A stretch of 63,663 nucleotides of DNA, the filler included, from Intoshia linei (taxonomy: Eukaryota > Animalia > Orthonectida): the NCBI GenBank assembly GCA_001642005.1. It is 7 parts of 7 records of this genome, joined end to end, with 100 filler letters (N's around TTAATTAATTAA, not from the genome) between each part and the next. Parts side by side here need not be neighbours in the genome. Positions count along the whole stretch, not along the records: positions 44,045 to 46,443 come from LWCA01002326.1; 6 more parts are not named here. One strand, 5' to 3'. The notes under the pieces were generated by a model. That model worked only from the letters and a program-made list of their open reading frames with translations. It had not been told where the DNA came from and made no database searches. The position numbers and the translations under genes were made by a program. This document shows positions 3,505 to 46,543 of this stretch, one piece after another; within the stretch, counting starts at the first letter, position 1, and each line of letters starts with the position of its first letter.

Positions 3505-6500
3505 TTATCGTTTTTTATGTCTATATTTAAGAGTATTTCGTAAAATTTTTTTTTCTATCGGTGCTGTGGAAGATGATACTGAAATATCAGTGGATACGTT
3601 AAAATTTGGTTGATTTAAATTTTCAAGGTTGGTATTTTCCACGTTAAAATTTAAGGAATCTGATAGAGTTTTTTTACTTTTAAATACAAATCTCTTTTCA
3701 TTAATAATTGGACTGTTGAACGACGATCTAACCTGTCTTAGGGCTTTGTGTGAATTTAGATAAAAATTTTTAGATTTGTTGTTGGAGTGCAATTCTTTTG
3801 GAGGTACCGTCAGATATCTAGTATTTTTATAAAATGTTTGGAGGGTATTAAGTGTATTATATTCATTAATTGTATTGGCAGATTTGGTCAAATTTGTATT
3901 GGAATTATCAACTAAATTAAATCAAATTATCTACATACATTATATAAAGGTGACCCCGTGTCAATCAATTTTATCGTGACGATTATAATCATGTTAGTTT
4001 TATCACAATTAAATTCATAAAATTTCTATTTATCATGATTGTTTTTATCAGTGTTTGTGTTTATAACGATTTTATCATAATTAAATTGTGAATTAAAAAC
4101 TACAAAATTATAGAAATAACAGTTGATTAAATTAAAAAATGCGTGAAAACGAGATATATAATTAATACTACTCCAAATATTTTATATTCAAAGCTACACT
4201 ATAGATGTAATTGAATTTTATGATCCGCAATATAGTGAAAATTATATTTGTGGGTAACATAATTATTTTAATGTGATAATTTGTTTCATAATTAAGTCCT
4301 TTATAAGGCGAATTTTCCTCAAAGTATATATTACGTTAGAAATCACGTTTGTCATAAAGTTTAAACGTTGATTTTCCAAACGGAATGTTAAGTATTTGTT
4401 TGGTTTTTTTTAATAATAAAATTCCCTGACTCAATTCTTTCTATTTAACAAACCATAAAAACAACAGACTACCGTGTATCTGTTTCTGTGTTGATGTAGA
4501 CATGATGGAGAATTAAAGTAACCATTTTAAAAGCTCCGTGAATTATACAGTCACCGGAACTTTCCCGTCATCACATTTTATTCTTGTTATCTATTTATCC
4601 ATATGACGTCATCGTATTAAAGGTATCAGAACGGTTAACACATATTCAATACAATACTGGATGGCTAAACACAGTATATATGGATCAGGATAAAAATTAT
4701 TATATATTCTTCTACAAAACAAGGCATTCAGTAAAAGAAATGATAAGCAAATATAAAACATTATATCAATGAATGAAAAGTAGTTTAGATAGCGAAATAT
4801 ATATCTAACTGACTCACGTGTAAAAATAACTGTCAACGATTAAATAATAAGAGCGCGTAATAAACATCATACAATCTGATTCATTTTCATGAAAATTGTG
4901 AGAAAAACTGATTAACATGATTATAATATATGTGATAGAAAATTTACCCGATAACACCAAAATGTTGCGATATATCTAAAATTAATCAACCCTCCTGATG
5001 TATTGTATTTAAATTTAAACTAGATTGTCGGTATTGAGCTGTGAACTAAAGTAGTTAAGTCTGCTCTAAAGAAGGTTTCCAAAAGTTTTAAAATAAATCC
5101 AATTCAAAAAAAATAAAATTTAAAATAATCAAACACACTTGAAATAATAAAATTGACATTATAAATAAATTAAAGTATAAAATGTATACTTTATATCTTT
5201 ATTGTTATATATTTCTTAGATTCTAAACCACAGAGTGCAAAAAATTCAAATATAAAATTTATAGCAAATTTATGTTTAAATTACATTTTAAAAACGATAG
5301 TTATAAATCTTTTTGAATAATGAAAATTGAATAAAATTTTCTTCAACTTAATTTTGTGATTTAAAAAATGCCATCAAAGATATAAATATCAGAGATTGTT
5401 ATGAAATTTTAAATTATAAAGTAGTAATATGCTTTATTTATCTTAATAATGTGTCATAATTTGCAAAATATTGATTATTAAAATGGTGATACAGACTGTA
5501 TATTTGATGCAATGCATGACTGTATCATACAGTGATATCTCGATTTAATCACGTTCGATTACTTAAATTTTAGTTTATTTAGAAACAATTTTAAGCCAAA
5601 AATATTTTTTGCAATCATAAATATGTAATTTTGACATTACATTTTAAATTAAATTTTAACTCCAAATAAACTAAAATTAAAGTAATCGAACGTGACTAAA
5701 TCGATATATCACTACGTTTTAGACTTAACTTTCTCTATTATTCAATAATGTACAATCAATGTGTATCAATCAGTACAATGGATCTTACTTTTAATAAATT
5801 TAAAGTATCGTTTTTTGCCAATATATTCAAATTTTTCCTTGACGGCTGGATAATTTTGCAGCAACACCAGCAAGTTTTTTTTAGACAAACTCAATAAATT
5901 GGAATAACCTACAGATCTAACATTAGCTGATCGTCTATTGACATTATAAATGTTGAATATTGCCAATTCTCCAAAATATGTGCCTTTGGTCAAAGTAGCT
6001 ATAATGTCCTTCTTATCTGGACGTTCTATCTCTTCAAAGTTTTTAGATTCTTTAATATTTTCAATAACTTCGATTTTCCCGTCTACTATTATATACATGT
6101 CTACGCCAATATCATTTTTGAAAAATACATAATCGTTTGGACAAAATGTTTGAGGTTGTAGTTTTTCGACCAATTTTTCAATGAAACCTATTTCGGCATT
6201 TTCAAACAAGTCTATTTTCGACAATATGTCAGAATAGGATAATAATTGAATTCTAATTTGTATTTTTCGGGGTAGGAAGGAAAAGTTTATTTTTTCATCA
6301 ATGGTATTTTTATTGTACCATAGGTAATCGTAATAATTTATTATTTTTTTCTCCATGTCTTTTGAAATGTTTCGTTTTCTTAGGAAGGATTTTGTCATTT
6401 CCAATTTATCTAATTTTAAAATTAAATGTTTTTACAAAAATATTGCATGATCTACAATGTACATCCGTGAGTGAGTGACCGTAAAATCCGTAATGTGATA

Positions 6501-44044: not shown

Positions 44045-44564
44045 TTGTTCCCATACATTTAATATTTGTTTGGTTAGCCGCTTTGATGATTTGGGAATAT
44101 GGTTTTAATTTTGATTTAATTGTATTATAAGTTTTTAGATTTAGACAGTTTATAGTTGATCCTGTATCAATTGAAAAGTGTATATTATTTAATGTGGTAA
44201 ATATACTTGATTGTAAATTTTTTGTATTGACATGGTCGATCTGGTGGTATGGACTTGAGAGATGGGTGGTTTTAAAAAAATTATTTAATTGAGATGTTTT
44301 GGAAAAAGTAACTTGAACTATAGCAGTGTCAATAATACAATCGTTTTTAGTAAAATATCTGAATGAATTTTGTGCATCTTCGTAATTGTAATATTTAATA
44401 AAAGCATACGATTTTCCTGATGGTATTCTAATCGATTGTATAGGACCAAAAATGCCAAATTCATTAATTAGATGTTGATATCCTATTACTTCTGTATCTT
44501 CATCGGAATTCATTCCTGAAATGTATATGCAGTTGTTTTCGTTTTTATTTATTAGTTTATCCAT
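44045..44564 (-). CDS. RRM-retropepsin (aspartic protease) fusion ORF, 3' truncated by spacer
   Basis: RNP2 IYISGM, core EFGIFGPIQSIRI, RNP1 KSYAFIKY; then FSIDTGSTINCL and flap IKAANQTNIKCMG of Ty3/gypsy-type proteases. No introns. Confidence 0.8.
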
Positions 44565-44808
44565 TTTTTTTTGTAAATTAAAATAGTAGTGTAGAACGAG
44601 TTTATACGTGAAAGTTGTATTTTAATTTAAGTGATTTAACACGATAATGAATGTAAATAAACTTAATGTTGTCGTTACATTACAGTCAATAAAGTTAATA
44701 AAGTCATTTTTTGAAATTGAAAATTGAACACTTCTATTTCATTCTAAAAAGTTTCACTTTTACAGGAAAAATTTTGATCATCACGAAATGATGTAACATT
44801 CATTTAGC

Positions 44809-45400
44809 ATGCCAAAAACTACAAAATCTCCTCATTTCAAAATCAACACCATAATGAATGCATCCTAATGAATTCAAGAGAACTCATAATTCACTTAGTT
44901 TTATAAATTGCAATTTCACTGTTTCCTTTGAAAAAATGCACTTTATTAAAGTTCACAGAAACACAAAAAAACACAGATTGCCAAACGATAGACCTCTACC
45001 TAAATTTTTAAAAATGTCTCATGATTTTACTGACCAAATTTTGGAAGCATTTATATCTGCAGATATTCCATTCTATAAACTGAATAACTTTAAAATTAAG
45101 CCCGTATTTAATGATTTAATAATAAATCGAGCTAAAGCCGCTGTCAACCAACTTGGATTAGAAAATGCTTTGATTCAAATATGTACATATTTATCTCTGT
45201 TAGATGTAATAGAAATGGCTCAAGANNNNNNNNNNNTTAGCATAGAAAAGGCCTACAATGTATTATGTAATTTGTCCTTTGATTCGGATCCCTGCAGCAT
45301 AAAGGATTATATTAATAAACGTCTAACGAAAAACGACATATATGCCATTATGAATAATTTAGATTCAAACAAATCCCCAATATTATATCATTCACAACGG
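44809..45400 (+). pseudogene. hAT-related (CGGBP1/DUF659-like) transposase remnant; a matching C-terminal piece lies at ~54506-54838
   Basis: HPNEF...CNFTVS..K.HF...H..TKKH zinc finger and AFISADIPFYKLNN. The 54560 region reads PPTSNGVERSFSMLK. Confidence 0.6.
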
Positions 45401-46543
45401 GGACCCTTTAGGGTCCACAGCACTTTTTTTGGGGTCCATAAAATTATACACATGTATTACATATTATATATTTAATTGATTTATTTGATATGACTTTCTA
45501 CAAAATTATCGGGAACTATGGAAATTTGCACTTTATTTTATTGCCTTCCCATCAACGTATTTAATGGAATGTGGATTCAGTTACGTAGTTTTATTATCAA
45601 AAAGAAGGAATAGGTGAGATATAGTCAAAAGAGGAGATCTAAGGCTAGCTTTATCAAATTTAGAACCTGATATAGAACTACTTGTAAAAAAGTCAATGCC
45701 CAGAATCTCATTAATTAAATATAATATAATGTTAGTGTTACAATTTAAAAATTTGTTTAATATTAATGGTTCATCAACTTTATCATTTCGAAAAACTAGA
45801 GTACTACATTTCATTTGGCCATCATTTGTTTCACCCAAATGTAATGATTCATTAAAAATTGTAATTATTATTAATTTTTTTGGGGGTCATAAATTCACGA
45901 TGAAAATCTAACAATTGTTAAGTCTTTACGCAAATGTTAACAAAAAAATTAAGATAAAATAATTCACTTTAAAGTAAAAAGTAATGTGATATGTTAATGC
46001 CACCTGAAACAAATTTGGGAACTACTCCTTTAAAGAATTAATAATAGTGAATAGTAGGATTTTTAAGTAATCTAATTTGATTAGATTTTCAACATGAATT
46101 TATTTTTTTTGTGTAAAAAGTGTATAAGTAATAAGCTAGGTGCTGTTTGTACGAGTATATACCTAGTCAACCTAGTATTATATATACATTATATATACAA
46201 TTGAATATCTGTGTTACCGTTTATCTGAAAAATTAACTGTTGTACAATTTAAAAAAACCCAATTTCTAATACAGTTTTTCGCTAGTGATGTTCATATCTA
46301 AGTTGAATTTTCCGATATTGATTCCCTTATGGTGAAAAACACAATTTTCAATTTTTTTTTTAAAATAAAATCATATACAATATGAATTTAAATTTATTAA
46401 TTATAATAATTAAATAATATATATATATTTTTATAATATTTATNNNNNNNNNNNNNNNNNNNNNNNNNNNNNNNNNNNNNNNNNNNNTTAATTAATTAAN
46501 NNNNNNNNNNNNNNNNNNNNNNNNNNNNNNNNNNNNNNNNNNN

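Follow-up and report, generated by a model that had tools for sequence, protein, structure and literature searches.

Positions 44684-44045 (minus strand) of the Intoshia linei DNA analysed here (assembly GCA_001642005.1), a joined stretch of 63,663 nt hereafter called the window, probably represent the 5' end of one copy, now decaying, of a Ty3/gypsy-type multi-copy long terminal repeat (LTR) retrotransposon (Metaviridae, probably Mag-like) that carries an RNA recognition motif (RRM) in place of Gag. I. linei is an orthonectid, i.e. a tiny parasitic spiralian, and the analyses were conducted on the piece corresponding to window positions 44045-46443 (2,399 nt, 26% G+C), which contains a 12-N scaffold gap at 45226-45237. 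Three sister copies, designated L001, L002 and L006, came to light by way of short annotated I. linei gene models. The features of the element in the window, together with the location of the sister copies, are as follows:

44565-44684, minus strand: 5' terminal region (putative LTR plus leader) of 120 nt, starting with TGTAATGT at 44684 and containing ATTAAA; defined by the start of similarity of the four copies and by its fit to the Mag C motif.
44590-44684, minus strand: 95-bp TGTA...TACA unit, of which the 5' edge alone is supported.
44618-44629, minus strand: arm A of a perfect inverted repeat, 12 nt, TAAATTAAAATA, element nt 56-67, containing ATTAAA.
44574-44585, minus strand: arm B of the same perfect repeat, TATTTTAATTTA, element nt 100-111, located 5 nt after the TACA, which is the usual position of a primer-binding site.
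44046-44564, minus strand: open reading frame (ORF) of 173 codons encoding the RRM, a linker and the N-terminal half of the protease; defined by translation, with the same frame intact in L001; its product is the I. linei protein-cluster member P0021.
44298-44537, minus strand: RRM domain, residues ca. 10-89, with a Pfam RRM_1 match above cut-off, RRM matches in PDB and cellular RRM proteins among the phmmer matches.
44202-44297, minus strand: linker, residues ca. 90-121, defined by translation, with no Pfam match, no recognisable domain and no CCHC knuckle.
44046-44201, minus strand: N-terminal half of a predicted retropepsin-type protease, with a weak match to Pfam gag-asp_proteas; the C-terminal half and the reverse transcriptase (RT) follow in frame in L002 and L006.
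L001: sister copy on LWCA01000832, reached via P0001.
L002: sister copy on LWCA01000326, reached via P0020.
L006: sister copy on LWCA01000598, reached via P0024.

The coding part of the window copy starts at a minus-strand ATG (44564), from which the frame is open over 173 codons to 44046, where it is cut by the edge of the piece; an ORF cut by the contig end had been described in the first-pass annotation of this DNA. In a sequence of 26% G+C, a frame of this length found full-length in two of the four copies is not due to chance. The first domain of its product is a canonical RRM, again as initially described: the Pfam RRM_1 profile matches the ORF with 23.8 bits (gathering threshold, 20.7), both signature motifs are present, namely RNP2 as IYISGM (residues 13-18; window 44511-44528, minus strand) and RNP1 as KSYAFIKY (residues 51-58; window 44391-44414, minus strand), and the best match of the ORF among solved structures is an RRM of TIA-1 (E 1.9e-4). 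When the ORF was compared by phmmer to 1.84 billion (1.84e9) protein representatives, 19 matches were obtained, 17 of which lie outside the family's own fragments (P0001 and P0004) and display 24-38% identity. Nine of these 17 were scanned with Pfam and all nine are cellular RRM proteins (SPEN/RBM15-like, PUF-RRM and others; 26-38% identity). In the same phmmer run, no protein matched the protease part of the ORF, and a word search with the 173-residue product gave no match. At E<=1, no PNMA-family Pfam match was detected in the window ORF, which is a weak test for an RNA-binding domain of that kind as the PNMA-type family is defined by structure. A SPEN-like gene (RRM plus SPOC) was observed at positions 1-2121 of L001, ca. 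8 kb from the element copy, and the best cellular matches of the element's RRM include SPEN/RBM15-type proteins. No similarity was found between the RRM of the element and this neighbouring RRM-SPOC gene, and their proximity is probably a coincidence.

Downstream of the RRM, a linker of ca. 30 residues, put at ca. 35 residues in the first-pass annotation, leads to the protease. The protease assignment is made because of a DTG motif (D133-T134-G135; window 44168-44160, minus strand), a weak profile match and, above all, the continuation into RT that is seen in the sister copies. L002 and L006 extend ca. 740 nt beyond the position of the window edge and both run on in frame through ...DIIGCKTAIERGII... 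into the RT. In L002, the linker and the complete protease, up to its end, lie in a single frame, with ...NIKCMGT being followed by TIIDISRIPELFYVCDTHDIIGCKTAIERGII, the second half of a retropepsin with its IIG motif, while in L006 the C-terminal half of the protease and the N-terminus of the RT share one ORF. The RT piece of L002 matches RVT_1 with 76.7 bits and contains YMDD (the window copy is cut upstream of the RT); among solved structures, this piece is closest to the RT of Ty3 (E 1.6e-24), ahead of the caulimovirus polymerase and of the foamy-virus RT. The ancestral frame is composed of RRM, linker, protease and RT without interruption. The first-pass annotation had proposed both a DTG retropepsin and a search for pol further downstream: the latter is found in the sister copies as a protease followed by a Ty3-type RT in the same frame, and the former stands as regards the DTG and its being in frame with the RT, whereas its profile support is weak and no solved retropepsin was matched.

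A word search with the RT piece returned two short metagenome RT fragments. Metagenome contigs L004, L005 and L007-L011 were dropped as relatives, their matching being limited to the RT, without an RRM. One of these, the marine metagenome contig L007, carries a decayed gypsy RT plus an ORF for an endonuclease of the long interspersed nuclear element (LINE) type (Exo_endo_phos_2) at 6057-6479, which correspond to nested or adjacent retroelements unrelated to the RRM element.

The multi-copy nature of the element is documented by the comparison of the four copies (window, L001, L002 and L006), which are 94.5-97% identical over their common 640 nt. Similarity of all four begins at one base, the T of TGTAATGTAAC (window 44684), and upstream flanks are unrelated. 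The fourth copy (P0024) was gained by a profile word search that added nothing else, and broken copies were searched as natural stop-free pieces only. The 173-codon frame is intact in the window and in L001; in L002, the start codon is lost, a stop occurs early, 10 nt are inserted and single bases are deleted, while L006 has several stops and a DTG that reads DKG. Variable sites are distributed as 14/17/11 over codon positions 1/2/3, and, of the codon changes between the window and L001, 4 are synonymous and 11 non-synonymous. This pattern is that of neutral decay after insertion and not that of a conserved gene. Contig breaks coincide between copies, with the window (44045) and L001 (10520) both ending at element nt 640, and L002 (11216) and L006 (11260) both ending at element ca. 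nt 1380. Contigs stop inside the element because short-read assemblers break at repeat branch points, and the family therefore has more copies than the four seen. RNase H, integrase, polypurine tract and 3' LTR are unseen in I. linei because the contigs end before reaching them. Four gene models currently annotated as "hypothetical protein" (OAF66777.1, OAF69161.1, OAF67686.1 and OAF67685.1; 63-103 residues), two of which UniProt lists as "RRM domain-containing protein", represent pieces of this RRM retrotransposon and not host genes; their annotation is hereby corrected.

The 5' boundary bears directly on the absence of Gag. The DTG is preceded by 132 residues, ca. 80 of which belong to the RRM, the remaining ca. 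30 being devoid of any CCHC knuckle or domain, and the element starts 120 nt before the ATG. A capsid is ca. 200 residues in size. There is no space for a capsid or a nucleocapsid ahead of the protease, as had been noticed from the window alone, and an upstream capsid exon, which was to count against the initial interpretation, is impossible because the element begins 120 nt before the ATG. Word, phmmer or profile searches with the element proteins detected no Gag-bearing relative. The earlier proposal that Gag was replaced by a captured host RRM is thus retained in part: the sequence is that of a retroelement and the RRM occupies the position of Gag, but for host capture no close donor was found, the best cellular RRMs being only 24-38% identical.

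An LTR at this terminus is a well-supported inference. In the Mag C clade of metazoan gypsy elements, which contains SURL, LTRs display the 5' integrase motif TGTNATRT (PMC3601003, Table 3) and are short, with a training-set length listed as 174 (PMC3601003). The first eight bases of the element, TGTAATGT, fit this motif (PMC3601003). No exact match to the Mag C 3' motif AYANAACA was found in the leader, in which ACA ends occur at element nt 95 and nt 113 as equally possible LTR 3' ends. Of the 95-bp TGTA...TACA unit delineated initially, the 5' edge coincides with the four-copy boundary and ATTAAA is present, but the 3' edge (TACA at 44590) is arbitrary, with similarity of the copies continuing into the ORF without a break. 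Neither the unit nor the 120-nt terminus was found a second time (as a solo or 3' LTR), whether in the piece itself or in the sister loci (33 kb).

No tRNA-type primer-binding site is visible, the only TGG of the 120-nt leader, or of the first 145 nt, being the one that overlaps the ATG; the absence of TGG after the LTR-like unit noted at first is in agreement with this. Rfam and tRNA scans of the 2,399-nt piece gave nothing above threshold and no tRNA gene. The leader contains the perfect 12-nt inverted repeat listed above, a length reached by 6 of 2000 dinucleotide shuffles, and this repeat forms the main stem of the minimum-free-energy fold (z -1.7). Arm B is identical in all four copies and arm A has a single A>G change, in L001, that would preserve a G-U pair. 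Pairing of the two arms may correspond to Tf1-like self-priming, by analogy with that system, and AT-rich DNA makes such inverted repeats easier to obtain by chance.

Outside I. linei, the only other family-like RRM protein in any search, including that of the 1.84e9 representatives, is P0004 (pairwise E 4e-13, 31-37% identity according to the alignment used), which is carried on L003, a metagenome contig of 1,015 nt (ERZ23491895). On L003, an ORF entering from the contig start ends at nt 300 and is followed by a purine-rich tract, GGGGATGGAGAAG, and then by TGTAATGTAA (301-339). The latter is the same 10-mer that opens the I. linei element, and the RRM ORF begins 287 nt later. Such a layout, with the end of pol, a polypurine tract, an LTR and the first ORF, is what an assembler yields from a multi-copy LTR element. 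This arrangement suggests that, in a second and old lineage as well, the RRM comes first among the coding domains. At a distance matching that of ...LNNIHFSIDTGSTINCL in the I. linei protein, P0004 ends with ...LLNTKFLIDTEFLIHY, a hint that the RRM-protease junction may be common to both. The ORF located upstream of the LTR-like terminus has no Pfam domain. L003 contains a 13-nt inverted repeat made of TAATTA-type palindromes, which has little evidential weight. No further related locus was detected in metagenome contigs (with P0004 as second query) or in viral contigs, and cluster look-ups for longer contigs left the L003 proteins and the L006 protein as singletons.

Based on these data, the following scheme can be proposed. 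A very short putative LTR plus leader (120 nt) precedes a single frame encoding the RRM, a linker of ca. 30 residues, an aspartic protease and the RT. The RRM would take over the RNA-binding task of Gag or nucleocapsid and, as the first part of Pol to be translated, would associate in cis with the RNA of the element, like LINE ORF1p or a nucleocapsid. The protease would free the RRM, and reverse transcription and integration would then proceed as in other gypsy elements (the integrase being unseen). Priming might occur by folding back of the 5' part of the RNA onto the 12-nt complementary site located just before the ATG, in a Tf1-like manner. In its strongest form, this scheme describes an autonomous, capsid-less gypsy-type lineage, occurring in orthonectids and in at least one other eukaryote, in which capsid and nucleocapsid would have been permanently replaced by a cellular-type RRM on Pol, and which would follow a ribonucleoprotein-based, LINE-like logic while being integrase-based and possibly self-primed as Tf1. 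In this form, the scheme is rather unlikely, and is put forward as tentative.

Several points weigh against the reading of an RRM in place of Gag as a whole. All four contigs break inside the element, with no full-length copy, and no copy among the four is demonstrated to be functional. The gag-asp_proteas profile match is weak (E 0.18 for the window, E 0.0097 for the longer L002 piece), a PDB sequence search with the protease piece matched no solved retropepsin, and AlphaFold models have a pLDDT (predicted local distance difference test) of 32 for the window ORF alone and of 41 for the L002 protease piece with a 5-row alignment; both are unusable, and the beta-alpha-beta-beta-alpha-beta fold is not readable from the single-sequence model of the window ORF. 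On L003, similarity to the linker and protease start taken alone is not significant (E 0.28) and the contig ends there. RNA binding by the RRM, and any role in packaging, are inferred, and a Gag might lie elsewhere or be supplied in trans.

A supply in trans is the alternative that fares best; it is less probable than the reading in which the RRM stands in for Gag, and about as probable as full autonomy. The element would then be a non-autonomous derivative of a gypsy element, possibly one with a PNMA-type Gag composed of RRM, capsid and nucleocapsid, that has lost or replaced its capsid and receives Gag from an autonomous relative. Gag-defective, partner-dependent LTR elements such as BARE2, large retrotransposon derivatives (LARDs) and TRIMs (terminal-repeat retrotransposons in miniature) are well known. 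The I. linei copies seen, all of them dead or partial, make up a single young family (94.5-97% identity), which such a derivation would accommodate, and metaviruses having an RRM-like domain ahead of the capsid do exist (PMC11011659). However, the frame from RRM to protease is clean and the linker looks native, no Gag-bearing relative was found in the searches made, and on L003 the RRM ORF is also the first one after an LTR-like terminus, FLIDT being found at the corresponding distance without a spacer the size of a capsid, this last part being weak.

That Gag might instead lie in another part of this element, either downstream of pol or in an unseen second ORF, with the RRM being an accessory N-terminal domain of Pol, is improbable. 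The sequence in hand covers the first ca. 1.38 kb of the element, which leaves room for it, but Pfam detects no domain in the L003 ORF ending just ahead of the LTR-like terminus and we know of no Ty3/gypsy lineage with gag after pol.

The domesticated RNA-binding protease that the first-pass annotation offered as an alternative, i.e. a host gene, is very improbable: the window and L001 both have an intact ORF and two fragments bear an RRM name in UniProt, yet the element occurs as at least four dispersed copies that share a terminus, with an RT in frame, and two of these copies have stops, frameshifts or a lost start, with no third-position excess. Finally, an assembly chimera of an RRM gene and a retrotransposon, which the short contig ending in a repeat and the coincidence of contig ends might suggest, is hardly credible, as at least four copies share a 5' terminus and the same colinear RRM-protease junction recurs on four contigs that are independent of each other and differ in their unique flanks; neither a single-copy chimera nor a misassembly at this junction, both of which had been considered at the outset, fits these data.

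The choice between an autonomous RRM element and a trans-dependent one determines its significance. LTR retroelements and retroviruses are considered to be defined by their capsid and to be unable to do without it, because reverse transcription is thought to need a particle. If the I. linei element is truly capsid-less, an LTR element can swap its capsid for a simple RNA-binding module, bridging the strategies of LTR elements and LINEs; otherwise, it would represent a clear-cut case, found in nature, of trans-dependence in an element that still selects its own RNA.

The remainder of the piece contains other features. A decayed coding remnant occurs at window 45546-45695 (plus strand) and reads FPSTYLMECGFSYVVLLSKRRNR(stop)DIVKRGDLRLALSNLEPDIELL; it presumably resembles the C-terminal end of ZBED5/FAM200-type hAT transposases, an assumption not confirmed by Pfam, which gave no match on its two stop-free pieces. 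An ORF of 205 codons (44858-45475, plus strand), interrupted by the 12-N gap and with no Pfam domain, may be part of the same hAT-like remnant. A GC-rich hairpin, GGGGACCCTTTAGGGTCC, is found at 45401-45428 (plus strand) in otherwise very AT-rich DNA, and has a sub-threshold match to the histone 3' stem-loop model (18.6 vs 34 bits). The motif TTTTTTTGGGG(G)TC(C)ATAAA occurs twice, at 45424-45442 and at 45875-45893, 451 nt apart.

When compared to known systems, the I. linei element shares features with several of them. A literature search, Repbase and GyDB being outside it, yielded no paper on an LTR element in which a canonical RRM is joined to the protease, and none was found under the accession of the assembly. 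As in the Mag C / SURL-type clade of Ty3/gypsy elements, to which it is likened by its terminus motif, the protease is followed by RT in one frame; the RT is closest to that of Ty3, and the terminus (TGTAATGT) fits the TGTNATRT motif of this clade, the LTRs of which are short (PMC3601003). It differs by having an RRM before the protease and not a capsid and nucleocapsid, by an LTR plus leader of 120 nt and by the lack of a visible tRNA-type primer-binding site. The latter property would be shared with Tf1 and the sushi-type self-priming chromoviruses, and a 12-nt stretch before the ORF is perfectly complementary to a stretch located 32 nt further 5'; a priming of the Tf1 type would further require the complementary arm to be the 5' end of the RNA.

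BARE2, LARDs and TRIMs are likewise LTR elements without a working Gag of their own, but these keep a disabled gag or have no coding capacity at all, and to our knowledge none has an RRM in the place of Gag. LINEs with an RRM-type ORF1p also have an RRM protein at the 5' end of the retroelement, thought to bind the element's own RNA, and no capsid. In contrast, LINEs have no protease or LTR terminus, belong to another RT class and encode ORF1 separately, often with a coiled coil; with a protease and a Ty3-type RT in frame, the I. linei element does not belong with them.

The nearest precedent is provided by vertebrate metaviruses. A 2024 report described an N-terminal RRM-like RNA-binding domain in PNMA genes and in "many modern metaviruses" of fish, amphibians and reptiles, as part of a Gag composed of this domain, capsid and nucleocapsid (PMC11011659), so that an RRM-like domain in a metaviral Gag is already known. 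These elements (of the Gypsy-30_Ami type, ancestors of PNMA) resemble that of I. linei in being gypsy-type with a first domain of RRM-like fold; in them, a normal capsid and nucleocapsid follow this domain, which was found only by structure and with a dedicated hidden Markov model (PMC11011659). The RRM of the I. linei element can be recognised as canonical from its sequence, has no PNMA-family match and is directly followed by the protease, with neither capsid nor nucleocapsid. This element adds an invertebrate, sequence-recognisable case to the metaviral Gags that begin with an RRM-like domain.
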